Part shown: in pieces, positions 692-62,712 of the stretch
How positions within the stretch are numbered: the stretch's first letter is position 1
How the letters are laid out: every line of letters starts with the position of its first letter
From: Selaginella moellendorffii
Taxonomy: Eukaryota; Plantae; Lycopodiophyta
Assembly (NCBI RefSeq): GCF_000143415.4
Contig: NW_003314333.1
Coordinates: forward strand, 813,815-877,814
Reading direction: 5' to 3'
Length of the DNA stretch: 64,000 nt
Position numbers and translations under genes: made by a program
Notes under the pieces: generated by a model
Database searches by the model: none
What the model saw: only the letters and a program-made list of their open reading frames with translations
What the model was told of the DNA's origin: nothing

Positions 692-3004
692 TCATATTTT
701 TCTTAGCAATCTTGGAGAACGAGGACGCTCCTCACAATAAATCTTCTCCTGGATGCTGAAAGATGGAGAGCTTCTTCCACTCTTGACGTTGTAAGCCCCC
801 TGTCCTGGAGAACGAGGACGCTCCTCACGAGAAATCTTCCCCCGGATGCTGAAAGAGCTTCTTCGGCTTCTCTGCTGGACTGGAAGCTTTCCCCGGATGC
901 TAAACTCCGGACTCACCCGGCCTAGTTTCGGGCAGTACGCTCCGGACCCTGGAAAATCATTCCATTCGTTGTTCTTCACCGGGCCATACATCGTAAATGA
1001 TGGACTCGTTGGCCTGGAAGAGATAGTATACGCTCCAGGTCCCGGAGAGCTGCTCCTGGAAGTGGAAGAAGCCGGGCTACTAAGTCGGCCGTGCATGCTG
1101 AAGGAAGGACCGTCCATGGAAGATCTCGAGGTGTAGGAGCCGGGGCCGGGGGTGTCACGTCCTGATAACTCTTCTCGCATCCTGTGCTGCGGACTGTATG
1201 ATCCCGGGCTGGGAGAGTTTGGAGTTCTTGGTGAGCTTTGTCTCGACTGCATGGTGAAAGCCGGGCCTCTGGGAAGCCGCACAGAGTAAGTACCGGGGCC
1301 TGGAACATCGCTTTCTCGTGGAGACGTCGCCTTGCCAGTGATGGTGAAAGCTGGTAGACCATAGCCGATGGTTCCATTCTCGTACTTGTAGGCTCCGGGA
1401 CCGGGACTTCTCGAGCGGGGTGACGAGTCTCGGGGCTTGCCAGTGATTGAAAAATGCGGGCCGTGTGGCTTCCCTATGATCCTGTACGCTCCTGGCCCTG
1501 GATTTTCTGTTTTGTCCTCCGGAACAAAACGGCGAGTGCCGAGAGAGAAGGATGGCGAGCTCGGCCTCGACACAACGTCGTAAGTTCCTGGTCCTGGAAA
1601 GTTCTCCTTTGGACGTAATGGAATCCTGGACTTGATAGTTATCCAGGGACCGTTTGTTTGAAACTCGGCGTCCTGGTGTTCTCCCGGTCCCGGAGTTGGA
1701 TCTGGTTGTGGAGGACCCGACGGCCGCCTCGGAGATAAACTGGATCTTCTCCTGGAGCTGGAACCTCTCCTGTCTAGATTGCCAGAGTCCCTTCTTCCTG
1801 ACTCCCCTCTCTCTGGATTGAAAGCCGGATCATCCGGTTCCGGCATCAAGAAGGTCCCCGTCTTTGTGATCTTGTAAGCCGGTCCTTTCGGATTCACCTT
1901 GACGATGAAGTAGCCAACTTCCTTTTTCTTCTCCTTCTTCTTCTTCGGCAGATGCTCGGGCCTGTAGCTGGAATAAACCCCGTGACCAGGAACGTTTGCA
2001 TGAGCATTCAACGAACCTTCAACCGCTGTCTTGGTCCAGCTAGTGTTTGTCTCTCGCATCGGGCCGGCACCTTTGCCTAGGACGGACAACAAAGAAGCAA
2101 ATGGCTTCGGGCTGTGAGCTCTGGGAGGCGAGTTAAACCGCGGCGCCATGGTGTAAGCCGGACCACCAAAAGTTCCTGGAAGATTGTGCTGCCCCGGCCC
2201 GGGACTCCGGTCCTTTGCAGCGTCTCTAAACCGAGGAGACATCGTGTAGCCTGGACCGTCCGGCCTCCTCTTTACGTAGTGTGCTCCTGGTCCGGGATTG
2301 TGAGACCTCTTGCCATCGCCAAGCCGGCTTCCCATCGAGAAAGCTGGCGAAGATGGCTGGGACTTCGGCGAGTACCATCCCGGCCCCGGTCCCGGCGATG
2401 ACGATCCTCCACGCAAAGTAGCCGGCTTTCCAAAGTTCGTGGAAACCAAACTGGATGTGTCTAGCGCGACGTTCTTGGAGCTGGAAGTTTGTGTCGATTT
2501 CTCTGCCATGGTTGTGATCGGGAGCTTTAGAGGCTCGAGCTTCTTGGACTGGACGCTGGCACCATCCTGCTTCTCAGAGATCCCACTGCTCCTATAGCTA
2601 ATCACCGGTACTCTAGTTGACAAGCTCTTGTTCCCCATGCTAGTGTGAGAGTTCCTGGAGCTCACCAGAGAGTTGCTGCTGCTACCATGGAAGAAAAATG
2701 GTGGTGGAGGAGGAAGAACCTCTATCTCGTCAAGCTCGCAAAGCTTAGCTCGAAAGAATCCACTCCCTCCTAAAATCTCTGGCCTGGGGACGCTGTTGTG
2801 GAGGAGCCTGGGATGAAATACAGTGCTGCCTCGACAAGAAGGATCGCAAGCCTGTGAGAGATTGCCTGCTACTCGTCTCGGAGAGCTTGTGATTCCAATT
2901 CCAGCACTGCTCCAAGCGGATCTGGGAGTGGTGCCGCCGCCGCCACCGCCGCCGTCCCAGTTCGTGTCGTGACCACTGCGCCAAAGAGCTGGCAGTTTGA
3001 TCAT
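692..3004 (-). CDS. Sperm-tail PG-rich repeat (SHIPPO-1/ODF3-like) axonemal protein
   Basis: 770-aa ORF with about 14 PGPGxY-type repeats (e.g. FPGPGTYD, NPGPGAYR, SPGPGAYK, TPGPGSYT), usually followed by P[AS]F[ST][MI] motifs, the SHIPPO-repeat pattern. True start and possible introns uncertain. Confidence 0.75.
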   Translation of the reverse strand: MIKLPALWRSGHDTNWDGGGGGGGTTPRSAWSSAGIGITSSPRRVAGNLSQACDPSCRGSTVFHPRLLHNSVPRPEILGGSGFFRAKLCELDEIEVLPPPPPFFFHGSSSNSLVSSRNSHTSMGNKSLSTRVPVISYRSSGISEKQDGASVQSKKLEPLKLPITTMAEKSTQTSSSKNVALDTSSLVSTNFGKPATLRGGSSSPGPGPGWYSPKSQPSSPAFSMGSRLGDGKRSHNPGPGAHYVKRRPDGPGYTMSPRFRDAAKDRSPGPGQHNLPGTFGGPAYTMAPRFNSPPRAHSPKPFASLLSVLGKGAGPMRETNTSWTKTAVEGSLNAHANVPGHGVYSSYRPEHLPKKKKEKKKEVGYFIVKVNPKGPAYKITKTGTFLMPEPDDPAFNPERGESGRRDSGNLDRRGSSSRRRSSLSPRRPSGPPQPDPTPGPGEHQDAEFQTNGPWITIKSRIPLRPKENFPGPGTYDVVSRPSSPSFSLGTRRFVPEDKTENPGPGAYRIIGKPHGPHFSITGKPRDSSPRSRSPGPGAYKYENGTIGYGLPAFTITGKATSPRESDVPGPGTYSVRLPRGPAFTMQSRQSSPRTPNSPSPGSYSPQHRMREELSGRDTPGPGSYTSRSSMDGPSFSMHGRLSSPASSTSRSSSPGPGAYTISSRPTSPSFTMYGPVKNNEWNDFPGSGAYCPKLGRVSPEFSIRGKLPVQQRSRRSSFSIRGKISREERPRSPGQGAYNVKSGRSSPSFSIQEKIYCEERPRSPRLLRKI

Positions 3005-3266: not shown

Positions 3267-5523
3267 ATGCTGAAGAGAAAGGATTCGATGGCGAGGAACG
3301 AGGGCGAGAAGATGGAGATTATGCCTCTGGGAGCTGGAAGCGAGGTCGGCCGATCGTGCTGCCACATGACTTACAAGGGAAAGACGATTCTGGTGAGTGG
3401 ATTTCGAGATTTCTTTCTTTCGAGCAAGGAAATGTGAAATGTGAGTGCTTACCTGCCCAGTTCGACTGTGGAATCCATCCCGGGTACACTGGAATGGCCG
3501 CGTTGCCGTATTTCGATGAGATTGATCCGTCGACAATCGACGTGCTGTTAGTAACTCAGTAAGGATTTTCCTTTTCGTTTCCTTTTATTGTTCTACTCTT
3601 CGTGATCTCTGTTCCAGCTTTCATCTCGATCACGCGGCCTCGCTTCCATATTTTCTGGAGAAGGTACTTGAGTTCTCTTTTGCGAGGCTGGTTTATAAAG
3701 TTTTGTCTCTCAGACCACATTCAAAGGCCGAGTGTTCATGACACACGCAACCAAAGCCATTTACAAGCTTTTGCTCACGGACTATGTCAAGATCAGCAAA
3801 GGGTCTGTCGAAGACATGCTGTATGACGAGCAAGACGTGCTGAAAACCATGGACAAGATCGAGGTATGTGTGGTGCTACCTGAGATCACATCACTTACGG
3901 TGCTTACAGGTTATAGACTTTCACCAAACTATGGAGGTGAATGGGATACGCTTCTGGTGCTACACCGCGGGACATGTCCTCGGGGCAGCGATGTTCATGG
4001 TGGATATAGCCGGTATCCGGGTCTTATACACAGGAGACTACTCCAGAGAAGAGGATCGCCACCTCAAAGCCGCGGAAATGCCAGAGTTTTCTCCAGACGT
4101 CTGCATCATAGAGTCGACTTATGGCGTTCAGATTCATCAGCCGCGACACGTCCGGGAGAAGAGGTTTACGGAGACTATAGCACAAACCGTGTCTCACGGA
4201 GGCAGAGTTCTCATTCCGGCTTTCGCTCTAGGACGAGCACAGGAGCTTCTGTTGATTCTAGACGAGTACTGGGAGGCTCACCCGGAGCTGCAACACATCC
4301 CGATCTACTATGCTTCACCGCTAGCCAAGAAGTGCATGGCGGTCTATCAGACTTACATCAATTCCATGAACGACAAGATCAAGTCTCAGTACGAGAACTC
4401 GAATCCCTTCAACTTCAAGCATATCTCTCCTCTCAAGAGCATCGAGCAGTTCGAAGATGTCGGGCCTTCGATTGTTATGGCTAGTCCAAGCGGTTTGCAG
4501 AGCGGGCTCTCTCGTCAGCTATTCGACCGCTGGTGTCAGGACAGGAAGAACGCTTGCGTGATACCGGGTTACGTTGTGGAAGGGACACTTGCAAAGACTA
4601 TACTCAACGAGCCGAAGGAAGTTGCCCTCGTCAGTGGCCTCGTAGTTCCGCTCAACATGAGGGTGGTGTACATCTCTTTTTCGGCACACGCGGACTTTGC
4701 TCAGACCAGCGCCTTCTTAGGGGAACTAAGGCCTCCGCACATTGTTCTCGTTCATGGAGAGCAGAACGAGATGGGCCGTCTAAAGGTCAAGTTACAGGCG
4801 CAGTTTGCAGAACAAAACGTCAAGATAAACTCGCCAAAGAACTGCCAACCCGTGGAGTTTTTTTTCAAAGGAGAGAAAGTTGCAAAGGCTGTTGGTAGGC
4901 TGGCGGAGAAAACACCAGACGAGGGGGGCGCAGTGAGCGGCCTGCTGATCAAGAAGAGCTTCACGTACCAGCTGATGGCTCCGGACGACCTTCATGTTTA
5001 CACACAGCTTTCCAGGGGCAGCATCCAGCAGAGGCTCTCAGTCCCATACGACGGCGCATTTGTTGTGCTGCGACACAGGATTGAGCAGATGTACGACGGC
5101 GTGGAACACGTTACAAAGGCCGAGAGCCAGACACTGAGGATCCATGACAAGGTGACGATTTCTCAGGAGTCAAACGAGCATGTGGTCCTCCAGTGGGTGT
5201 CCGATCCAGTGAGCGACATGATAGCGGATTCAATAATTGCGATCATCACGAAGATGGATCCTCGCTTGCTGACGGACGCCAATGGTCTGCCGAAGATTGA
5301 GGAGGATCTTACGGTTGTCCAGTCGCTGCTCACGTCTTTGTTTGGAGACGTCAAAGTAGACGAGGAAGGGAAGAAGCTCGTGATTTCTGTGGACGGAGTT
5401 GCTGCCACTGTGGACTACACCAGCCGCAGCGTCGAGTGTGACGACGACAATCTCAAAGAACGCATCAAATCTGCTCTTCACAGAATGCATAATGTTCTAC
5501 ACCCTCTGGCGATTGAAAGCTGA
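3267..5523 (+). CDS. CPSF73: Cleavage and polyadenylation specificity factor 73 kDa subunit (metallo-beta-lactamase/beta-CASP), multi-exon
   Basis: Spliced N-terminus MLKRKDS...[20 protein letters not shown] motif, [35 protein letters not shown]; GT-AG introns in 3393-3909. Confidence 0.95.
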
Positions 5524-13261: not shown

Positions 13262-15994
13262 TCAAACTTGGTCAGTAAGAAGTTTGCGAGCTTCACTCTC
13301 GACGTTGTCTACCGTGAAGCCAAATTTCTTGAACACGTCCAGGTAAGCTCCACTCTTTCCAAACGAGTTCACCGCAAGAACCCGGCCATGGAAGCCAACG
13401 TACTCTCTCCATCCAACCGGCGAGCCAGCCTCCACGCTCAATCTCTTCTTCACGCTCCTCGGAAGAATCTCATCCTTGTACTCGAGCGGCTGCTCGTCGA
13501 ACAGCTCCCAGCTAACCAGCGACACCACTCGGACCTTGAGTCCATCGTTTCGCAGCTTCTCGGCCGCTCCCTCGCACAGGCATAGCTCGGAGCCTGTTCC
13601 GATGATAATGAGCTCGGGATCGCTGCCGCTGGAGGAATTGTCGCTGACGATGTAGCCTCCCTTCTCAACCTTGTCAGCCGAAGTTCCTGCTACGTGAGCC
13701 TGGACTTTCTGCCTGGAGAGTGCGATCACGGTCGGGCCTGAATCTCGTCTTCTCACTGCCACTTTGTATGCTCCGCTGGTTTCGTTGCCATCAGCCGGGC
13801 GTAGAACGACCAAGTTTGGGATCGCTCGAAGTCCCACGAGCTGTTCTACTGGCTGGTGCGTCGGACCATCCTCACCCAGGCCGATGGAGTCGTGCGTGCA
13901 AATGTAGATCACGCCGGCTCGGCTGAGAGCTGAGAGCCTCATGGCGTGTTTCATGTAGTCGCTGAAGGCTAGGAACGTTGCCGCGAACGGGATGAGACCG
14001 CTAGAGTGGAGAGACAGGCCATTGGAGATCGCTGCCATTGCGTGCTCACGAATTCCATAGCGGACGTTTCTTCCCCACGGAGTCTTGTGTTGGAAATCAT
14101 CGTAGTCTTTGAGATAGGCCTTGTTTGATGATGCTAAGTCTGCACTGCCGCCAATCAGTCCAGGAATCACAGTAGATAATGCGTTGAGGCATTTCTCCGA
14201 GTAGCTTCGGGTGGCGTCCACAGGATCTGATTGAGACCATGTCTATAAAACAAACAAAAACGTGAGACACGAAACAAAACTACTAAGTGAAGTGAAACAC
14301 AAAAAACTTACCGGTAAGACTTTTTCCCATCCCTCGGAAATAATATTTCCAAGAAGCTGTTTGAACTCGTTGGCCTCGTTAGGAAATTCCTGCTCGTACT
14401 TGGCAAGCTCTATGTTCCACTCCTCTTCTATGCATTCTGCTTCCTTGGCCTTTTTCTTGAACTCCCTGGAACGAAGCTTAGTCAAGACGCAATGAAGATA
14501 CTCGACTTACTCGTAAACCGTGGGTACGACATAGAAAGGCTCTCTTCCCTCCCAACTAAGAGCCGCTTTGATGCCTTCCACGTCTTCCTCGTCAAAAGTT
14601 CCGTGATGTGCTTTAGAAGTTCCTTGTTTCTTAGAAGGAAAACCGATTGAAGACTTTACCTGAACAAAATGCGGCTTAGCAAACGAAAGCAATAAGCATT
14701 CTCACGATACTCTACCTGGATTAATGTTGGTTTCTCAGTTTCCGCGAAAGCTTCGTCTAGAGCTTTAACAAACTTTCCAGGATGCTCGTGGATATCTTCC
14801 ACAAGAATCGTTTGCCATCCTAGAGCCCTGTATCTGCCAGCCACATCCTCCGAGAACGCAAGCTCTGTATCACCATCAATCGTATTATGATTGTCATCGT
14901 AAATGACTGTGAGCTTGTCGAGTTTCCAGTGCCCGGCTAATGAAGCTGATTCGTTTGAAATGCCCTCCATAGCGCATCCATCTCCCATAATGCAAAACCT
15001 GTAAAAATTGATGTTTGTGATAAGATCCACGAGTTGTTTCCTTACGTTCTGTGGTTAACGATATCATGTCCCGGTTTATTGAATCGTGCTGCTAGATGAC
15101 GTTCCGCTAACGCTAGTCCCACAGCATTTGCTACTCCTTGTCCAAGAGGACCTATAAACCAAAGAAGAAGAAGCAAGAAATCAATAGCATCAAACCAGAC
15201 TGAAAAAAATCATACCAGTTGTTACTTCGATACCAGCAGTCTCAGAATTTTCTGGGTGGCCTGGAGTACGTGCTCCAAACTTACACAGGCGTTTCAAGTC
15301 CTCCATCTAAGAAGAAACAATCGCAGGCTAAGAACAAACAAGAAAGAAAGAAAGAAAAACCTCAAACCTGGACAGATTCAAAGCCTGCTAGATGAAGACA
15401 TATGTACTGAAGAAGGCAGCCATGGCCAGCGCTAAGAACGAAGCGATCGCGATTAAACCATCCAGGATTTCCTGGATTGTATTTCATCACCTTCCTGTAG
15501 AGCGTGAATCCAACCTCGGCCATTCCCAGAGGCATTCCTGGATGCCCAGCCTTGGCATTGTTGACGGCATCCACCACAAGCATGCGCATATTTTGGACGC
15601 ATCGTCGATCGATCTGTTCCTGGAGCCATTCCTTGTCGCGAGCGCGTCCATTTGCCTTGGATTCATCCCACACCCTTGATCCAAGTATCATCTTCAGCTC
15701 ATCCTCCCACACCTCCACAGACCCTAGCTCCGATTCTTCCCGGAATTCCTCCCTCGCTGTGTCCACGGATCTATCGTGCGTCTCCCGCGGCTCGATATCG
15801 AGCGCCGTGGATTTCCGGATGGACTCCTTGACCTGATCCCTCTGCTGGGACGAGGCGCGAACCTGGAGATGGAGAAACCTGTGCCTGTGAGCTCCCGCCG
15901 GCGATCGAGCGAGAAGAAAGCGCCCGGCCCTGGCATTGTAAATCGAGGACGAAATCGAGAGAGAGCCCGTCGATGATGCTGTGAGGGACGCCAT
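13262..15994 (-). CDS. Transketolase with plastid transit peptide, multi-exon
   Basis: [23 protein letters not shown]-binding GDGCAMEG...[36 protein letters not shown]. Confidence 0.93.
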
Positions 15995-16239
15995 TGCTGC
16001 TCTCTCGAGCATGAAAGACCTTCCATTCGAAATATAGGGCTTTAACAACAAACGTGGCAAGAGCCAACAAGGCCAAGTGGCAGCCGCGCGTCCAAAGTAC
16101 ATATTCACTGGTTATGACTACCATAACTATGTTTAGTTCTATATGTGTTTAAAAATAATGAACTTGTTTAATATTAAAAAATATTTTTAAAATAAAAAAA
16201 TTTAAAATAATTTCTTTGTTAACCCCAAAACAAATAACT

Positions 16240-16385
16240 ATTATGATTATGACTATTATTATTATTATTATTATTAAAAGTCCAGAAGAAAGAATCAGAT
16301 AGAATAGATGTTTTAATGGGTAAAATAAGCATATTATTATTATTATTATTATCATCATCATCATCATTATTAATATCATTATTAG
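16240..16385. repeat. (ATT)n/(ATC)n trinucleotide microsatellites downstream of BURP copy 1
   Basis: attattattatt... and atcatcatc... runs, much reduced at the equivalent position of copy 2. Confidence 0.8.
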
Positions 16386-16400
16386 CTTTTTTAGATCCAA

Positions 16401-18311
16401 TCAAGCATAGACACTGGCAGTGGGAACGAACATAATGACCGTTTCCACAAACCAGTGACAAACATAAGTCTTGCCCATCTTGTGGCACAGAACGTTTGGA
16501 GTGAGCTCCATGCCACTGCTGGTCTTCACATTTACTTTGGAAGCGCTGGTGCTACTCACCTTGTGACAGAAGTAAACTTTGTATGGAAACATAGTCGTGT
16601 GGCAGACGACCATAAGAGTGTCGCCTTTCGTGATGGGCTTGACCTCGCCAAGCTTGATAGTTTTTCCAACCTCGGCCGCAAAAGCCTTGCTTCCTGTCAC
16701 CATGGTAATCTCCACAGGGCCAAGGGTGGAGGTGACGAACTCGGCCATTTCTTCCGTGGAAGCCACACACTTCATCTTCCCCCCAGCATTGTCATTGCAG
16801 AGTTCCAGAGTGAAGGCCATTTTTCTTGCCAGTGGAGACTCCTTTGGGACGTTAAACTCTTTCAAGTATGAGTCAAGGCTCCGCTTACCGAAGTTTGTGT
16901 GCTTAGCCATTGCGCTTGGCAGGAGTGCCCGTGGAGGATAAGTGTCACGGATGTTTGGGAGGACACTTTCAGTTCCTGTCAAGATTTTCCACAAGTACGA
17001 GTAAGAAGATAAGTTTGCAAAAGGAATGTTTGGACATACCGTTTCTTTGTCGGAGTTCTTCCAGTGTGAAGAAGTGATGGAGCATTCCAGGGGAGCACTT
17101 CGTTATTAAGGCTTTGATGGTTGGCCAGTCCATAGAGTGCAGTGACTTCCTTCCTCCATAACCCTCTTCCTCGTACTCAGTAAAAATCTGGATCAAATAC
17201 AGCGGCATGTTCTTCTTGCAACTAGTGCTTGGTTTGACAGAAGCATCGCCAAAGTGAGCATTTCCTCCTAATCCGTGGTCACCAAAGTGAGCATTTCCAC
17301 CTAGAGAAGCATCACCAAAGTGAGGATTTACGCCTAAACCATGGTCTTTGAAGTCCCCAAAGTGAGCATTGCCACCTAAACCTTTGAAGTCTCCATTGCC
17401 ATGGTCCTTAAAGTCACCAAAGTGAGCATTACCACCCAAACCATGATCTTTGAAATCGCCGAAGTGCGCGTTGCCACCCAAACCATGGTCTTTGAAGTCG
17501 CCAAAGTGGGCGTTACCACCCAATGATCCATGGTAACCATTTCCACCCAAACTTTGGTCTTTGAAGTCACCAAAGTGAGCATTACCACCGAAACCATGAT
17601 CTTTGAAATCGCCAAAGTGCGCGTTGCCACCCAAACCATGGTCTTTGAAATCGCCAAAATGGGCGTTGCCACCCAATGATTTGAAATCGCCAAAGTGGGC
17701 ATTGCCACCCAAGTCATGGTCTTTGAAGTCGCCAAAGTGTGCATTTCCACCCAATGATCCGTGGTCTTTGAAGTCACCAAAGTGCGCGTTTCCACCCAAT
17801 CCAGTGTCACCAAAGTGAGCATTTCCGCCAAGCCCGTGATCCTTATGAAAGTCACCAAAGTGAGCGTTTCCACCCAGAGCTCCATGATCTTTGAAGTCAC
17901 CAAAGTGTGCATTGCCGCCAAGATCTCTGGCTTCCAGCGAGCGTACACGGTCATGGAAGTCACCAAAGTGAGCATTCCCTCCGAGCTTGCTTGCTGCAAG
18001 GGCGGTCTTCTCTGCAGCATCGCCAAAGTGGGCATTGCCTCCATGCCTTCCATAAGGATGACAAAAAAATCCTGCACGGTGGCAAAGCTTTGCATCGGCC
18101 GTGAAAACGCCTCTTCTCATCTGCTCGCCGAAGCGAGCCGATTCGAATGCCCCCAGAGGCGAGGCTTCATCGGCGAAACTCGTGGCGATTATGTCACTGC
18201 ATTCGGAAAGCTGCCCCAGCTTTAGTAACGATTGAACGATAGAAGTTGGAAAGAACTACTTACAAGGAGAGACGAGAAGAGAAGAGATAGGCCGAGCGCA
18301 AGGCGATCCAT
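16401..18311 (-). CDS. Secreted BURP-domain protein with GGNAHFGD repeat array, copy 1 (exons 18311-18264, 18219-17040, 16975-16401; about 600 aa)
   Basis: Signal-peptide exon MDRLALGLSLLFSSLL; repeat array; BURP start HFFTLEEL...LPNIRD..P.RALLP; CVASTEEM; four CH dipeptides (CH-x10-CH-x25-CH-x7-CH); GT-AG introns keep frame. Confidence 0.9.
17245..18042 (-). repeat. Coding tandem repeat: 17 exact GGNAHFGD plus one GVNPHFGD
   Basis: Counted in the translation; unit mostly 42 bp with synonymous codon variation. Confidence 0.95.
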
Positions 18312-18519: not shown

Positions 18520-19666
18520 GATAAGGACCCGCACCAACTTTCGGGCTGGACGAATTCTGGCAGAATTTTCAAGATAATTATTTAATCTAATTAATTTGTA
18601 TTAAGGTTGGGACTACTACTTCTGCAATTGATCCATTACCAGCACTGGCTGATAGTGCCAAGGTAAAAATACATTTTCTAGTTATTGAATGTTTTAATAT
18701 TTTCCAAGAGACGGGAATGTGGGATGTGGTTCCATGTTGATGCAGCTTATGCTTGTAATGCATTTGTCCAGAATTTCGACATTTTTTAAATGGTGTTGAA
18801 AATGCCCACTCTTTTAATCTAAGTGCAAATAAGTGGCTTCTTACCAATATTGACTGCTCCATACTTTGGCTGAAGGTTTGATCTTTTACAAACGTTACGA
18901 TCAATTTTTAATATACTCTTACAGGACTCTAAGCAGCTATCTTCGACACTTTCAACATTAACAAACAAAGAGGTATGAGTTTTTAAATCTACTCTTTTTC
19001 ATAGTTCAATTCAGTCTCGGGTGGTAAATTTCAAAGATTGGCAAGTTGCTCAAGGAAGACGATTTAGGTAAGTGCGAATAATTCTTTTTCCTTTGACATG
19101 GGATACTCTTTTCAGATCTTTAAAGCTGTGGTTTATGATGCGCTTGTATGGAGCCTCGGGACTTCGTAGCCACATAAGAACTCACATAAACCATGCTAAG
19201 CATTTCGAGATCCTTGTGCGAGAGGACTCTCGCTTTGAGGTATAACTCGTGAGAGTTCTCTAAAATTGTGAGACCATGATCTACGTTTGTGAGTTGCCAG
19301 ATCTTAGCACCATGTCGATTTGGTCTCGTTTGCTTCAGGCTCAAACCAAGTGTAAAACAGTAAGGGCCAACAGCGTCGAGCGCCGTCAGGTGGTCGAAGA
19401 TTGGAATGGACACTCGGAGAGATCTCTGTGAAGATAACGGAGGGAAACTGAACTGTTTGCTTCTGGAAGCTGGGGGAAAGATTTTCATGACACAAGGAGC
19501 TCTCAAGCTATAGTGAAATGGGACTATAACCTATTTATCCTCAGGTACTCTCGGGCGTGTATACATTGAATGTCAATTGGTGGCACGCAGACTAAACGTG
19601 AAAATGTTGATGGTGCGTGGAAGATAATCCAGGAGGAAGCACAAAACTTGTTAGATCAAGATTAAT
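18520..19666 (+). pseudogene. Truncated duplicate of the AADC-like decarboxylase
   Basis: Near-identical to 23900-24990 but lacks about 1 kb of 5' exons, has small frameshifting deletions and an approximately 70-bp foreign insertion. Confidence 0.88.
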
Positions 19667-20728: not shown

Positions 20729-22693
20729 TCAAGCATAAACAGTGGCAATGGGAACGAACATAATGACCGTTTCCACAAACCAGTGACAAACATAAGTCTT
20801 GCCCATCTTGTGGCACAGAACGTTTGGAGTGAGCTCCATGCCACTGCTGGTCTTCACATTTACTTTGGAAGCGCTGGTGCTACTCACCTTGTGACAGAAG
20901 TAAACTTTGTATGGAAACATAGTCGTGTGGCAGACGACCATAAGAGTGTCGCCTTTCGTGATGGGCTTGACCTCGCCAAGCTTGATAGTTTTTCCAACCT
21001 CGGCCGCAAAAGCCTTGCTTCCTGTCACCATGGTAATCTCCACAGGGCCAAGGGTGGAGGTGACGAACTCGGCCATTTCTTCCGTGGAAGCCACACACTT
21101 CATCTTCCCCCCAGCATTGTCATTGCAGAGTTCCAGAGTGAAGGCCATTTTTCTTGCCAGTGGAGACTCCTTTGGGACGTTAAACTCCTTCAAGTATGAG
21201 TCAAGGCTCCGCTTACCGAAGTTTGTGTGCTTAGCCATTGCGCTTGGCAGGAGTGCCCGTGGAGGATAAGTGTCACGGATGTTTGGGAGGACACTTTCAG
21301 TTCCTGTCAAGATTTTCCACAAGTACGAGTAAGAAGATAAGTTTGCAAAAGGAATGTTTGGACTTACCGTTTCTTTGTCGGAGTTCTTCCAGTGTGAAGA
21401 AGTGGTGGAGCATTCCAGGGGAGCACTTCGTTATTAAGGCTTTGATGGTTGGCCAGTCCATAGAGTGCAGTGACTTCCTTCCTCCATAACCCTCTTCCTC
21501 GTACTCAGTAAAAATCTGGATCAAATACAGCGGCATGTTCTTCTTGCAACTAGTGCTTGGTTTGACAGAAGCATCGCCAAAGTGAGCATTTCCTCCTAAT
21601 CCGTGGTCACCAAAGTGAGCATTTCCACCTAGAGAAGCATCACCAAAGTGAGGATTTACGCCTAAACCATGGTCTTTGAAGTCCCCAAAGTGAGCATTGC
21701 CACCTAAACCTTTGAAGTCTCCATTGCCATGGTCCTTAAAGTCGCCAAAGTGAGCATTGCCACCCAAACTTTTGTCTTTGAAGTCACCAAAGTGAGCATT
21801 ACCACCCAAACCATGATCTTTGAAATCGCCGAAGTGCGCGTTGCCACCCAAACCATGGTCTTTGAAGTCGCCAAAGTGGGCGTTACCACCCAATGATCCA
21901 TGGTAACCATTTCCACCCAAACTTTGGTCTTTGAAGTCACCAAAGTGAGCATTACCACCGAAACCATGATCTTTGAAATCGCCAAAGTGCGCGTTGCCAC
22001 CCAAACCATGGTCTTTGAAATCGCCAAAATGGGCGTTGCCACCCAATGATTTGAAATCGCCAAAGTGGGCATTGCCACCCAAGTCATGGTCTTTGAAGTC
22101 GCCAAAGTGTGCATTTCCACCCAATGATCCGTGGTCTTTGAAGTCACCAAAGTGCGCGTTTCCACCCAATCCAGTGTCACCAAAGTGAGCATTTCCGCCA
22201 AGCCCGTGATCCTTATGAAAGTCACCAAAGTGAGCGTTTCCACCCAGAGCTCCATGATCTTTGAGGTCACCAAAGTGTGCATTGCCGCCAAGATCTCTGG
22301 CTTCCAGCGAGCGTACACGGTCATGGAAGTCACCAAAGTGAGCATTCCCTCCGAGCTTGCTTGCTGCAAGGGCGGTCTTCTCTGCAGCATCGCCAAAGTG
22401 GGCATTGCCTCCATGCCTTCCATAAGGATGACAAAAAAATCCTGCACGGTGGCAAAGCTTTGCATCGGCCGTGAAAACGCCTCTTCTCATCTGCTCGCCG
22501 AAGCGAGCCGATTCGAATGCCCCCAGAGGCGAGGCTTCATCGGCGAAACTCGTGGAGATTATGTCACTGCATTCGGAAAGCTGCCAAACAGGAATCCCCA
22601 GCTTTAGTAACGATTGAACGATAGAAGTTGGAAAGAACTACTTACAAGGAGAGACGAGAAGAGAAGAGATAGGCCGAGCGCAAGTCGATCCAT
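20729..22693 (-). CDS. Secreted BURP-domain protein with GGNAHFGD repeat array, copy 2 (exons 22693-22646, 22601-21368, 21303-20729; about 618 aa)
   Basis: Near-identical to copy 1, with one extra 14-aa repeat (FKDKSLGGNAHFGD) and a 4-aa insertion near the signal peptide. Confidence 0.9.
21573..22412 (-). repeat. Coding tandem repeat: 18 exact GGNAHFGD plus one GVNPHFGD
   Basis: Counted in the translation. Confidence 0.95.
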
Positions 22694-34985: not shown

Positions 34986-37459
34986 ATGGCGCTCGCGCTG
35001 TTCTTCGCCCCAGATCTTCCTCCTCTGGCAGCGATCGCAGCGGCGGCAGTGGGCGGCGTAACGATCGATCCGGTTTCTAGCCTCCCTGAGGGATCCAAGC
35101 CGCAGCTAGCGCTGGAATCCGGGTAAGGGTTTAAGAAAGATTGCGTGCCGATCGTTTTTGATAGATTTCTTCCAATGCAGTGACAGGCTACTGGGATTGA
35201 ACACGCTGGTGCGATTTTTCGGGCGATTGAGCTCGCTACACGGATTCTATGGCGTCGATCCGGTCACTGCTTCTCAGGTAGCCACATTCTTTGGCTCACG
35301 GCTTTAGAACACTTTTTTCTGATCCCAGGTAGACGAATGGCTGGACTATTCACCGAAGTTTAGCGCTGGTGCCGAGTTTGAGGAGTGTTGCCACTACGCC
35401 AATTCCTATCTAGCGATGCGTACCTTCCTGGTGGGATACACTACCACTGTCGCGGATATCACGATCTGGTCATCTCTCGCTGGTAATCTTCGAAGGAAAA
35501 CTTTGAGGCACTGAGGAATTTTATCTTCCATTTTGTTGCAGGTGGAGGCAAGAGGTGGGAGAGTATGAAGAAGTCTGCAAAGTTCCCACATCTTTCACGC
35601 TGGTATGACGCCATTTCAGTCGATCGTCCGATACTCCAGGAACTAGCTTCCAAGTACGTTGGGAAAAGGGGACTGGGAAGGCCCGTCTCTGTTGAAGCGA
35701 AGCCAGTAGGAGCCGCAGCGGCTGGAGCTCCAAAGAAAGGGAAAGCCGACGTCCAGCAGACTGAGAAGGCCCAGAAGGTCGAAGGCTCGTTCGAGATATC
35801 TTTGCCGGGTGCCGAGATGGGAAAGGTGTGCACTCGTTTTCCACCGGAGCCTAGCGGCTTTCTCCACATCGGGCATGCGAAGGCTGCGTTTCTCAACGAG
35901 TATTTCGCGCGGAAGTACGGAGGGAAGCTGATTGTGCGGTTTGACGACACGAATCCGAGCAAGGAGAAAGACGAGTTCGTGACGAATATAATGCAGGACC
36001 TGGAGACTCTAGAGATCAAGCCAGACGAGGTCACGTACACGTCCGACTACTTTCCCGCTCTAATGGAAATGGCAGAGAAGCTGATCAAGGAAGGGAAAGC
36101 CTATGTCGACGACACTCCCAGGGAGGTGATGCAGAAGGAAAGGATGGACGGGATCGAGTCGAAGCGCAGGAATCAGAATGTGGAAGAGAACTTGGCGTTA
36201 TGGAAGGAGATGGTGGCAGGGACGAAAAGGGGCCTGAGTTGCTGCTTGAGGGGAAAACTCGACATGCAAGCACTGAACAAGACGCTGAGAGACCCTGTGT
36301 ACTACAGGTGCAACCCGGAGGAACACCACAGGGTGGGCTCGAAGTACAAGGTGTATCCAACGTATGACTTCGCATGCCCGTACGTGGACAGCACCGAAGG
36401 AGTCACTCATGCGCTTCGATCCAGCGAATATCACGACAGGAACGAGCAGTATTACAGAATCCTCGCGGACATGGGTGTAAGACCGGTCCATACGTGGGAC
36501 TTCAGCCGTCTCAACTTCGTCTATACACTTCTGAGCAAGCGGAAGCTGCAGTGGTTTGTGAGCCAGGGCCTCGTGGAAGGCTGGGACGATCCGCGCTTTC
36601 CTACAGTGCAGGGCATGCGAAGGCGTGGCCTGACTGTTGAGGCACTGCGCCGCTTCATCCTTTCACAGGTAAGAAAAATCTCTGGGAACTATTGAGTTTC
36701 TAACGATCCTCGTGTTCCTTTCCTCCAGGGCGCGTCAAAGAATCTGAACCTGATGGAGTGGGACAAGCTATGGACGATCAACAAGCAGATTATCGACCCG
36801 GTTTGCCCGAGGCACACGGCGGTCTTGAAGGATGGAAAGGTTCCACTCACTTTGCGAGACGGACCAGAGACGCCATTCATCCGGATCATACCTCGGCACA
36901 AGAAGTTCGCGGGAGCAGGCAAGAAGGCTACCGTTTTTGCGAACACCATCTTAATCGACAAAGCCGATGCGGAAGCAATTCACGAGGGGGAGGAGGTGAC
37001 ACTCATGGACTGGGAAACACCATCATCGAGAAGATCGACAGGGAGGGGGACAAAGTCACTGGCTTGTCCGGGGTGCTGCATCTCGAGGGATCGGTGAAGA
37101 CCACCAAGCTCAAGCTGACATGGCTCGCGGATCATCCGGAGCTCGTGGATCTCAACCTCGTTGAGCTTGACTACCTTATCAGAAAAGAGAAGGTAATTTT
37201 TTTTCCTTGGTTTTGGCTCTGGATAAATGTCGTTTTCTTTCAGATGGAGGAGGAGGACGAGCTGCTTAATGTGTTGAACCCGGTCACTAAAATCGAGGTG
37301 GCAGCGGTGGGCGATTCCAACATGCGAAACCTCGCCAAGGGGGAGATTATTCAGCTGGAGAGGAAGGGGTACTTCATCTGTGACGCGCCGTACGTCCGAT
37401 CGACGAGTCCGATTGTGCTCATCAGCATACCAGACGGGCGCCAGCGCCCTCGACAGTAG
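34986..37459 (+). CDS. Cytosolic glutamyl-tRNA synthetase with an apparent 1-bp frameshift near 37013
   Basis: GST-like N-terminus, TRFPPEPSGFLHIGHAKA (HIGH motif), RFDDTNP, LLSKRKL, GWDDPRFPT, QLERKGYF. Confidence 0.92.
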
Positions 37460-41840: not shown

Positions 41841-43445
41841 ATGGAGAACAGGGGCATGAGGCTGCGCGTTCGTGCCGCTGGCGGTGGCGCCACACATCGC
41901 ATCCAGGTACCGGCACCAGCAAGAATCTACGATCTCCGCCACGCGCTCTCCCAGACGATTGGCGTGCCGGCGGATAGCATCCGGCTCTCGCTCAACAAGC
42001 GCGACGAGATAGAGGGCGACGCGTCGGCGCCGCTGGAAGCGTATGGAATTCGCCCCGGGGATCTTCTCTACTACTTCGATCGGGACCTAGGTTTCTCGGG
42101 TTCACGCACAGGTGAGGCGGTTTCAAGGGAAGTGGAAAGGAGGGAATTGTGTGCCTCGGCAGCGGATAAGCGTGCTCGAGAGCAAAAGGCTGCTCTTGCG
42201 GAGGAATCCTCGGCGACAAGGAGTAGAGTTGAGGCTGTGGATCGAAATGCCGGGCAACCATCGCCGCCGCAGGTCGAAGAACAACGTCGAATGGAAGAGG
42301 AGGCTGTGAATCGAGATGTCGAGCAAGAGCAAGGATCGGAGGAACGATCCATGGAAGGGGAAGAGGAGGAAGTCCGGAACAAGTACTGTCACCTTATCCC
42401 AAATCTCCTCTCGAGGCTTTTGTCCGTGGAAGGCAAGAACGTGGGGAATTCGCGAGACCTCTTGATCTTGGCGGTCCACGCAGTGATGCTCGAGACTGGA
42501 TTCGTGATTCTGGGCCGCCCGACAATTGCTGGAGCTTCCTCGATCAAGTATACTCTTCCAGAGCTCGGCCAGCTCAAGAACGATGAGGCCAGAGTTCTTC
42601 TCCGGTGTCAAAGCGTTGGAGAATTCATGGTTGTCTACGGCAGCGTCCAGGGATCGTCTCAGATCTTCCGCCTTAGCCTCTCCATCTCCAAGTTTCTGGG
42701 AGAAGTTCTTGTGGAAGGAGAATCAAAAGGTGGTGGTGGTGGAAGCCAGGAGCAGCAGTACCAGGCTTCTTTCTCGCTCTACAAGGACGCGTTTGCTCTC
42801 TGGAAGGAGATCAAGGACAACCTCACGCTGCGGTTGCTGATGCTGCTGTGCGAGATCGCGGGGCTGCCACTGCCGGCGTGCTTCCAGATCCTCCCCACCG
42901 AGCTCAAGATGAAGATTCTCGAGTTTCTTCCAGCTTTAGACGTCGCCAGGATCTCGATGGTCTCATCGGAGCTGAGATTCCTCGCCGCCAACAACGATCT
43001 CTGGCGAATGAAGTTCGCGGGCGAGAGTTTCAAGCTCAAGCAAGGGGAAGCTCCGCCGGCGAGCTGGAAGGTCGCGTTTGTTCGCGAGTGGTACGCGAGG
43101 AAACGGAGAGAACGCATCCAGGTCCTGTCGCGGAGAGACGTCATCGTTCCCAGGAGGAACTTGAGGCCACACCATCCCTGGGGGATCATCGGGGGCGACT
43201 ACGATGCTTACCCGGAGATCCCATTCCTTCCGGCGCGAGGAGGGATCAATCCATTCGGGGGGCTGAGGTTTCGGCGGCCTCTCAATCCTGGATGCATTGG
43301 CCCCGCGAGCAGTGGGATTGGATCGGGAGGAGGAGCACTGCCAGAGCTCTCCCGCCCAGGTGAAAATCCTCTTCCTCTTCCTTTCTTCACGGATCACGAT
43401 CATAGTGGAAATCCTCCTTTCTTCATGGATCACGGTGAGACGTAG
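41841..43445 (+). CDS. F-box protein SKIP22/FBXO7-like (Ubl + FP/PI31-like + F-box)
   Basis: MRLRVR ubiquitin-like N-terminus, LAVHAVMLETGF, F-box LPTELKMKILEFLP, Pro-rich tail with IIGGDYD. Confidence 0.88.
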   Translation: MENRGMRLRVRAAGGGATHRIQVPAPARIYDLRHALSQTIGVPADSIRLSLNKRDEIEGDASAPLEAYGIRPGDLLYYFDRDLGFSGSRTGEAVSREVERRELCASAADKRAREQKAALAEESSATRSRVEAVDRNAGQPSPPQVEEQRRMEEEAVNRDVEQEQGSEERSMEGEEEEVRNKYCHLIPNLLSRLLSVEGKNVGNSRDLLILAVHAVMLETGFVILGRPTIAGASSIKYTLPELGQLKNDEARVLLRCQSVGEFMVVYGSVQGSSQIFRLSLSISKFLGEVLVEGESKGGGGGSQEQQYQASFSLYKDAFALWKEIKDNLTLRLLMLLCEIAGLPLPACFQILPTELKMKILEFLPALDVARISMVSSELRFLAANNDLWRMKFAGESFKLKQGEAPPASWKVAFVREWYARKRRERIQVLSRRDVIVPRRNLRPHHPWGIIGGDYDAYPEIPFLPARGGINPFGGLRFRRPLNPGCIGPASSGIGSGGGALPELSRPGENPLPLPFFTDHDHSGNPPFFMDHGET

Positions 43446-61800: not shown

Positions 61801-62712
61801 GCCACTTTATTCCTTTGGCAACCACAGCAGATGTAAAGACGGTGGTTGAGCTGTTCTATTTGGGAATTGTCTAGTACCATGGGATCATGAGTCATTTCTG
61901 GAGATCCTTGTTCTAGTCGCTAGGAACAAAACTTAGTTACACTACATATCATTCCCAAATAGATGGATAGATTGAAAGGACAAACTAGACAATGAAAACC
62001 TTCCTCAGGGGCTACACTCTAGACAAGCTGAGCAGCTGGGTGAAATAGAATTCACTTATAATTCTGCACAACACACATCCCTCTCTATTTCAAGCATTGG
62101 CAAGTTTCTCTACTAGGCATGGTAGTGGATGGCTCACTACCTTTGGATGTCGAGGAGCATTTGTGGGGAGTACAGGAAATTTGGCAACTAGCAAAACAAA
62201 GGCTGGAATCTACTCAGGCGTCTATGAAATTCTTCTATGATCAGCATCCCTCATCCAAACAATTCTCAATTGCGGATTATGTCTATGTCAAGTTCAAACC
62301 CAAGAGATATACATTGGGGAGGAGAGCCAAGGGCTGTTTGAAACTTCAGCCTCAATTCTTTGGTCCATTCCAAGTGGTTGAGGCAATCAATGAGCTGGCT
62401 TATTGTCTTGAGCTCCAACCAGGAACAAGGCTCCACAATGTTTTCCATGTGCCCGACCTCAAGTACCACCATGAGGAGCTGTCTTTAATCCAAATTTGGA
62501 ATCAGCTGGTGAGGACAGACAAGTTCTCTTGTGGCCAGAAAGGGTCATCAAAGTGCAGGAGTGGAGGCTATGTAACTGGACTCTTTGTTGTCACAAAATA
62601 TGCTGGGAAGGATTGGATGACAACAAGGATACCAAGTGATGGACAAAAAACTCCAAGACCTTGGTGGGTAAGCAGCAACTCTAAAGGACTAGAGTTTTCA
62701 AGCTGGTTATAA
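58900..62712 (+). mobile_element. Degenerate Ty3/gypsy LTR retrotransposon pol (PR-RT-RH-IN)
   Basis: Protease-like IDFGASHTFI, RT FFDDILV, RNase H VETNASDVGTG, integrase ECHSGMLAGHLG, GPY/F motif FFGPFQV and LHNVFHV; gypsy domain order; many stops and frameshifts. Confidence 0.9.

Follow-up and report, generated by a model that had tools for sequence, protein, structure and literature searches.

A tandemly duplicated BURP-domain gene of Selaginella moellendorffii with a PG1-beta-like layout and a repeat array without FxxY

Introduction

How a BURP-domain protein with the layout of the polygalacturonase isoenzyme 1 beta subunit (PG1-beta) might work when its repeats hold next to no tyrosine is the question raised by a gene of the lycophyte Selaginella moellendorffii. 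The gene lies in a 64,000-nucleotide (nt) stretch of contig NW_003314333.1 (positions 813,815 to 877,814 of the forward strand), referred to here as the window, whose own numbering is used throughout. PG1-beta proteins are abundant wall proteins whose FxxY repeats bear an unusual modification of phenylalanine, and later work has established BURP domains as copper cyclases that depend on Tyr or Trp. As the initial annotation of the window stated, the Phe of FxxY is converted to didehydrophenylalanine (didehydro-Phe), a conversion published only for angiosperm FxxY proteins, as is binding of the mature protein to the wall or to PG2; Phe outside FxxY was found unmodified (PMC5313189). In every burpitide cross-link described, the side chain of a Tyr or Trp takes part (PMC11253845, PMC12164859), and none of the indexed papers links burpitides with didehydro-Phe.

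The Selaginella gene is a natural test case in that it combines a PG1-beta layout and an intact-looking BURP fold with a near letter-perfect repeat that lacks Tyr: if the Phe is still modified, Tyr is dispensable, and if it is not, the array has been recruited for something else, perhaps for binding metal. The gene also bears on whether the PG1-beta architecture is older or younger than the divergence of lycophytes from the remaining vascular plants. It has been annotated, and published work groups it with PG1-beta, naming six BURP genes of S. moellendorffii SmPG1-6, among them SmPG4 (XP_024515919.1) of 597 amino acids (aa), the same length as the product modelled here, and SmPG6 of 641 aa (PMC9121072). 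New here are the character of the repeat (none of the indexed papers mentions its sequence or the locus tag), the selection on its LGGNAHFGD core, and its uncertain register against the PG1-beta repeat.

Gene structure, duplication and transcription

The gene, copy A of a tandem pair, is transcribed, spliced and duplicated, and encodes a predicted secreted BURP protein with a PG1-beta layout that belongs to the PG side of the main BURP split described below. Its three exons specify a product of 597 aa.

16401..18311, minus strand: BURP gene copy A, full coding span, ATG at 18311 and TGA at 16401, three exons (open reading frames and translations)
18264..18311, minus strand: exon 1, encoding MDRLALGLSLLFSSLL, a hydrophobic start typical of a signal peptide (sequence; N-terminus of database protein P0001 identical)
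18211..18263, minus strand: intron 1, 53 nt, GT..AG (53-nt-skipping joint in contigs from 3 runs)
17040..18210, minus strand: exon 2, with the N-terminal conserved segment, repeat array, post-array linker and start of the BURP region (translation)
16976..17039, minus strand: intron 2, 64 nt, GT..AG, phase 1 (64-nt-skipping joint in contigs from 4 of 4 runs)
16401..16975, minus strand: exon 3, BURP domain (Pfam PF03181; unbroken RNA contigs across it)
20729..22693, minus strand: BURP gene copy B, tandem duplicate (open reading frames, DNA alignment, RNA contigs with copy-B-specific bases and 3' untranslated region)

The exon junctions of copy A agree with P0001, and its introns are supported by spliced contigs from four runs belonging to four studies. 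Exon 2 alone gives no Pfam match. A candidate 44-nt intron after FCHK (GTGAGT...CAG) was rejected, as it would shift the frame and RNA contigs read straight through it. RNA-like contigs of three runs also contain a joint that skips 111 nt inside the array (17426-17538; CA..AC, with 15 shared letters), which is a repeat-number variant from another allele or a paralogue, or an assembly collapse, and not an intron.

Copies A and B are near-identical from ~100 nt upstream of the ATG to the stop codon, copy B differing by one additional 42-nt repeat unit, an intron 1 that is 12 nt longer, and few substitutions. Contigs of run X2 carry the bases and 3' untranslated region of copy A and those of runs X1, X3 and X9 carry copy B's, and thus both copies are represented in spliced, RNA-like assemblies; contig depth is unsuitable for ranking their expression. 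The similarity between the copies ends directly after the stop codon, and (TAT)n microsatellites are present in the 3' flank of copy A at 16239-16384. In run X10, which is labelled as a different organism, 69% of the gene's sampled words are present, which may reflect a relative, a wrong label or a mixed sample.

The repeat array and selection on its core

17245..18045, minus strand: repeat array, 18 units built on an (L)GGNAHFGD anchor plus a variable linker, modal unit 14 aa (Tandem Repeats Finder, translation, codon test)

Tandem Repeats Finder reports period-42-nt arrays across 17249-17913, together with a 153-nt period at 94% identity that reflects a local higher-order duplication. The minus-strand translation of 17041-18210 contains 18 HFGD anchors in copy A, spaced by 20, 21, 15, 15, 11, 15, 14, 12, 14, 14, 23, 14, 14, 20, 14, 11 and 11 residues; copy B has 19 anchors, P0001 has 21, and a second database protein, P0002, has 18. 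The repeat reported in the initial annotation is therefore present. It lies inside the span given there (17140-18219), whose start falls within the post-array linker and whose end falls within intron 1, exon 2 occupying 17040-18210. A 14-aa unit likewise stands as the mode (6 of the 17 intervals) and not as a constant length, since units range from 11 to 23 aa.

The most frequent unit is FGDFKDHGLGGNAH, within which the invariant block is LGGNAHFGD and the linker varies in length (FKDHG, FHKDHG, FKDHGS, FKS, TG, AS, HG and others). The second Phe of the unit sits in this variable linker and is missing from 5 of the 18 units. Gly makes up 26% of the array and His, Phe and Asp 12.4% each, in keeping with its description as His-rich; it has no Trp and a single Tyr, found in one atypical unit.

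Pairwise comparison of 17 LGGNAHFGD cores in copy A gives a proportion of synonymous differences (pS) of 0.726 and of nonsynonymous differences (pN) of 0.027, and seven of the nine core codon positions use at least two synonymous codons at appreciable frequency. These codon patterns indicate that the identity of the units is kept by purifying selection on old copies and not by recent DNA homogenisation; the array had been called homogenised, a description that fails at the DNA level (pS 0.73 between units).

Regions flanking the array

18061..18186, minus strand: N-terminal conserved segment ATSFADEASPLGAFESARF...KLCHRAGFFC (PG1-beta-like profile)

Both flanks of the array resemble PG1-beta proteins. 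A hidden Markov model (HMM) was built on six PG1-beta-like proteins, and P0001 was aligned to it as a full-length proxy. P0001 residues 25-370, comprising the N-terminal segment and the array, align with HMM positions 52-380 (29.2 bits, bias 11.7), and residues 441-600, the BURP domain, align collinearly with positions 406-563 (96.6 bits). Scored alone, the N-terminal segment reaches 7.1 bits, which none of 500 shuffles attains. Both subfamily flanks (ASPL...FC..A.LFC and GKFFRE..L..G...P.PDIRD..P.RSFLPR) are found within the alignment, in agreement with the earlier observation of PG1-beta-like strings ASPLGAFESARF...LCHRAGFFC and PG..HFF...LPNIRDTYPPRALLP on either side of the array.

The two flanks are not equally informative. 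The pattern P[DN][ILMV][RKS]D..P.R at the BURP start occurs in 15 of the 30 rows of the PG1-beta clade in the tree below and in both rows of the Selaginella family, and is absent from all 35 other PG-side rows and all 81 RD22-side rows (0 of 116 together); looser versions are seen in Diphasiastrum and moss proteins. A putative lyciumin precursor of Selaginella uncinata, P0014 (VCHSLGFFC), also has a recognisable form of the N-terminal segment, which is probably motif 16 of a published MEME analysis; that motif stands in the study's 'conserved domain' column and is also listed for moss BURPs (PMC9121072). From its occurrence in these two groups the segment is probably an old PG-side feature, and on these counts the BURP-start pattern appears the more telling of PG1-beta affinity.

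The same study gives the motif order of SmPG4 and SmPG6 as 16, 2, 19, 9, 20, 10, 5, 4, 14, 1, 6 (PMC9121072 supplement) and that of Arabidopsis PG1-beta-like proteins as 12, 16, 2, 9, 20, 10, 5, 4, 14, 1, 3, 6. SmPG4 and SmPG6 thus share with the Arabidopsis and rice PG1-beta-like proteins the repeat-domain motif 2 and motif 14, the latter being otherwise confined to PG1-beta-like proteins, and are without motif 3 (PMC9121072).

Register of the array against the FxxY repeat

PG1-beta-like proteins have multiple 14-aa FxxY repeats (FTNYGxxGNGGxxx), and the 18 Selaginella units have the same modal length and no FxxY. An empirical profile was derived from 120 units with FxxY exactly 14 residues apart in nine PG1-beta-like proteins, and reads F(0.96)-[TKS]-[SN]-Y(0.96)-G(0.51)-x-x-[AGS]-N(0.71)-[VG]-[GA]-x-[DN]-x. 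Selaginella 14-mers were scored against it in all 14 cyclic registers. The top register, FKDHGLGGNAHFGD (FKDH), scores -4.9 and places Phe on F1, His on the Tyr column, Gly on G5 and Asn on N9. The register of the initial annotation, FGDFKDHGLGGNAH (FGDF), which had been read as a Tyr-to-Phe version of the PG1-beta motif, scores -16.8, ~12 bits lower, because Lys falls on G5 and Leu on N9. HMMER aligns the first one or two units in the FGDF register and most of the array in the FKDH register. In either register the tetrapeptide equivalent to FxxY includes the most variable part of the Selaginella unit, the opposite of PG1-beta. Scored alone against the PG1-beta-like HMM, the array reaches 20.6 bits, which is matched by none of 200 periodic shuffles (maximum 20.0) and none of 200 global shuffles.

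On these alignments, common ancestry of the Selaginella and FxxY repeats is a possibility that we place somewhat short of even, and if the repeats are homologous it is more likely that the Tyr column holds His (FKDH) than Phe.

17152..17184, minus strand: FTEYEEEGYGG, the sole FxxY tetrapeptide outside the array (translation; HMM score -1.7 bits)

This string is present as reported, in the region following the array. Its earlier interpretation as a surviving canonical PG1-beta unit was rejected, one F..Y being seen outside the array against a chance expectation of 0.57, with an HMM score below zero.

The BURP domain and its predicted fold

Exon 3 matches Pfam PF03181 with an E-value of 1.9e-30 and 106.5 bits (gathering cut-off 27) over profile positions 24-179 of 216. 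It retains the four Cys-His motifs, spaced as CH-X10-CH-X25-CH-X7-CH. The family motif, CH-X10-CH-X25-27-CH-X25-26-CH-X8-W, is departed from in the last spacing and in the final residue: the alignment shows a deletion of ~19 residues (xDTSxWxxxHxAFxxLxxxPG) between the third and fourth CH (CH3 and CH4) and a terminal Trp replaced by Phe. The short CH3-CH4 spacer is present in the mRNA, as RNA contigs run unbroken through the C-terminus of the domain.

AlphaFold2 predicts the domain with a mean predicted local distance difference test (pLDDT) score of 94.1 and a predicted template modelling score of 0.87 from an alignment of 61 sequences. A Foldseek search with this model matched only 8sy2 and 8sy3, the peanut BURP cyclase AhyBURP, at an E-value of 5e-8, a template modelling (TM) score of ~0.5 and a root-mean-square deviation of ~3 A. 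By motif and by predicted model the domain therefore has the copper-site Cys-His motifs and the fold of a BURP cyclase. In AhyBURP the CH motifs form two bis-His copper sites stapled by disulfides (PMC12164859, PMC11253845), and these four copper-site motifs are also in the Selaginella protein, with a similar predicted fold. The two are only 21% identical, however, and AhyBURP lies on the RD22/USP side, has a full-length CH3-CH4 segment, and acts on a core, QPYGVYTW, that contains both Tyr and Trp.

Database relatives and phylogeny

Exons were searched separately, with P0001 as the full-length stand-in. The only close database relatives are two S. moellendorffii proteins, P0001 (642 aa), which NCBI names 'polygalacturonase non-catalytic subunit AroGP3-like', and P0002 (548 aa, SELMODRAFT_229071). 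Word-index protein searches with exon 2, the P0001 BURP region and a 150-aa piece of the array returned only these two or nothing, a result limited by length windows and low-complexity scoring and so no proof that the family does not occur elsewhere. When the BURP exon was run in an exhaustive HMMER search, 404 proteins were matched at E <= 0.001, with at most 39% identity outside the family. Among the best matches are proteins of 600-640 aa with 21-22 FxxY, namely P0007 (an Acorus 'polygalacturonase-1 non-catalytic subunit beta'), P0008 (taro), P0050 (a Cephalotus BURP-domain protein) and P0004; a Welwitschia protein with 5 FxxY was also matched. P0004 is encoded on the Logan contig SRR8442378_8244 (gene at 83-1945) and has 620 aa, 22 FxxY and the ASPL segment. 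It is the best full-length PG1-beta-like match to the BURP exon (E 2.2e-17), and ends in VWVPLP, to be compared with ...MFVP in Selaginella.

Trees were computed for 148 rows and, with more care, for 78 rows; the sample consists of the 150 best matches to the query and is not balanced across the family. One split is strong, with 99 in the Shimodaira-Hasegawa-like approximate likelihood ratio test (SH-aLRT) for 148 rows and 95/93 for 78 rows. It separates an RD22 side, with spinach and peanut RD22, from a PG side that holds every FxxY protein within one clade of 30 rows, plus moss, lycophyte, fern and gymnosperm BURPs. The Selaginella BURP domain falls on the PG side in the maximum likelihood trees. 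The proposal that the gene is a PG1-beta offshoot stands to this extent; in the same trees the domain branches outside the FxxY clade, although not significantly so. When the Selaginella protein and the PG1-beta clade are forced together, the log-likelihood drops by 2.13 and the approximately unbiased test gives p 0.418, so that a sister position is not rejected. On present alignments the protein may be the sister of the FxxY clade, or an early PG-side branch near the fused burpitide precursors of Selaginella. An older neighbour-joining study placed the lycophyte and moss BURPs all in a separate 'BURPIV' group (PMC6102523). Intron position was tried as a shared character and rejected: the taro PG1-beta-like gene P0008 is intronless, and AtPGL genes have one short intron.

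Origin and possible function of the array

The reading to which we give roughly an even chance is that the protein is a lycophyte-specific, strongly diverged relative in the PG1-beta lineage, not a member of the FxxY clade, whose array acts as a multivalent binder in the apoplast or wall. After secretion, the His- and Asp-rich array (HFGDFKDH, with two His and two Asp per unit) would be located in the cell wall or apoplast and could bind metal ions or wall matrix at many sites. The folded BURP domain with its four Cys-His motifs might modify the array, or be cleaved off as in tomato PG1-beta. FxxY-dependent chemistry could not run as in PG1-beta because Tyr is absent.

The protein resembles the PG1-beta/PGL proteins (the tomato polygalacturonase isoenzyme 1 beta subunit, AroGP2/3, AtPGL1-3 and OsBURP12/14/16) in being secreted and in the order of its parts, with a signal peptide, an ASPL...C..A..FC segment, ~20 repeats and a BURP domain. 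Its repeats are likewise modally 14 aa and rich in Gly, Asn and Asp, with two aromatic positions three apart; the BURP domain starts with (L/M)P(N/D)IRD..P.R..LP and lies on the same side of the main BURP split; and it is named after PG1-beta by NCBI and as SmPG in PMC9121072. Unlike them, its repeat is without Tyr and has 12% His and an invariant LGGNAHFGD instead of FxxY, and its BURP domain is outside the FxxY clade, has lost ~19 residues between CH3 and CH4 and has Phe for the terminal Trp. Its introns are in the signal peptide and at the BURP start, in contrast to the intronless taro gene.

Several observations weigh against a PG1-beta-lineage origin of protein and array. In the maximum likelihood trees the BURP domain lies outside the 30-row FxxY clade on a long branch (1.25), where its weakly supported partners (85 SH-aLRT) are the putative S. 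uncinata lyciumin precursor QFZ95611 (P0014), an Araucaria BURP and an unnamed protein. HMMs of the clades do not discriminate (PG1-beta clade 118 bits, remaining PG-side rows 145, RD22 side 125). The PG1-beta clade holds a fern (Adiantum) protein without an array, and FxxY arrays may therefore have arisen after the lycophyte split. Column permutations give p 0.13 for the best register, which is thus not significant, and 14 PG1-beta-like proteins contain no in-register FxxF or FxxH units. Reversed, the array scores 20.5 bits against 20.6 for the real one, which suggests that its similarity to PG1-beta lies in periodic arrangement and is not demonstrably directional homology; with the register result, it could be one of periodic composition only. 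AlphaFold2 of exon 2 alone has a mean pLDDT of 42.8 and no confident array structure, and is uninformative on the beta-solenoid that had been suggested. The two observations that together would speak against a PG1-beta offshoot, a domain outside the PG1-beta clade and a lack of register homology, are each seen in part, neither of them decisively.

These same points bear on three other explanations. One, which we regard as possible but on the unlikely side, is that the array was amplified independently in a Selaginella-specific BURP lineage, so that homology would be limited to the N-terminal segment and the BURP domain, both ancestral to the PG side, and the likeness to PG1-beta is due to chance or similar physical demands. 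The reversed-array score and the register test are as expected from such convergence, as are the inverted conservation, with the FxxY equivalent in the variable part, and the array-less fern protein. Motif 16, probably the N-terminal segment, is also present in array-less moss BURPs (PMC9121072), and BURP lineages often bear unrelated repeats such as the TxV of RD22 and the lyciumin cores. Convergence has to account, however, for an array at the same position in the protein with the same modal period and a similar copy number (18-24 versus 21-22), for a score reached by none of the 200 periodic shuffles, and for the shared PG1-beta-specific BURP-start motif and MEME motifs 2 and 14. The original proposal, that FGDFKDHGLGGNAH is FxxYGxxGNGGxxx with Tyr changed to Phe, its first Phe perhaps still didehydro, in an offshoot of the PG1-beta clade that was homogenised recently, we find very doubtful. 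It shares with the tomato consensus (PMC6102523) a period of 14 and coinciding F1, G8, G10 and G11, places the invariant Phe of HFGD on the F1 column, follows the HMMER register of the first one or two units, and fits the PG1-beta-like flanks and the published didehydro-Phe of FxxY (PMC5313189). Its register scores -16.8 against -4.9 for FKDH, however, with Leu on N9, the most conserved non-aromatic column (71% Asn), and even the FKDH register is within chance (p 0.13). The Phe assigned to the Tyr column is in a dispensable linker that lacks it in 5 of 18 units; most synonymous sites differ between units, hence there was no recent homogenisation; the BURP domain is outside the FxxY clade in the maximum likelihood trees; and Phe outside FxxY was found unmodified (PMC5313189).

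A third explanation, which we consider rather unlikely, is that the protein is a fused burpitide-type precursor, kin to the fused cyclases of Selaginella rather than to PG1-beta, in which the LGGNAHFGD blocks would be core peptides or in-protein substrates of its own copper BURP domain, modified independently of Tyr and Trp. Strong purifying selection on a short repeated peptide whose codons drift is expected of multi-core precursors, the four CH copper motifs and the predicted fold are kept, and the genus makes burpitides, SkrBURP of Selaginella kraussiana producing selanine A (PMC11253845). Like SkrBURP and the putative lyciumin precursor QFZ95611 (P0014), the protein has a signal peptide, SPL...CH..GFFC, many near-identical short repeats and a C-terminal BURP domain with four CH motifs, and P0014, its nearest tree neighbour, also shares FPYKVY.CHK. 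The cores of these cyclases carry ring-forming Tyr or Trp, in contrast, and the S. moellendorffii units carry neither, their repeat period and sequence being unrelated; P0014 has a full-length BURP C-terminus and is without the PDIRD..P.R motif. Known cross-links need Tyr or Trp (PMC11253845, PMC12164859), and the array does not offer repeated cores with either (no Trp, and one Tyr in an odd unit). Between CH3 and CH4 the domain has lost ~19 conserved residues, and the grouping with P0014 is weak (85 SH-aLRT). It is a long shot that LGGNAHFGD, at ~18-24 copies per protein, is modified by its own BURP domain independently of Tyr and Trp, whether by desaturation of a Phe that has no Tyr beside it or by a cross-link from His to Phe; if true, this would be a new class of BURP chemistry and would show the role of the FxxY Tyr in PG1-beta.

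Other features of the window

Between the two BURP copies, at 19072-19242 on the plus strand, is a 57-aa open reading frame similar to the C-terminal part of pyridoxal-dependent decarboxylases of the aromatic amino acid type (PF00282, E 3.5e-10, positions 318-361 of 375). It is probably a gene fragment, because a whole gene would not fit there. Directly downstream of copy A is a transketolase gene (13262-16108, minus strand) with the N-terminal thiamine diphosphate-binding, pyrimidine-binding and C-terminal domains in separate open reading frames. Pfam matches identify further genes as follows.

692..3004, minus strand: SHIPPO/PG-rich repeat protein
3868..5523, plus strand: CPSF73-type endonuclease
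35565..37459, plus strand: class I Glu/Gln-tRNA synthetase
41841..43445, plus strand: F-box protein
62119..62712, plus strand: Ty3-type integrase fragment

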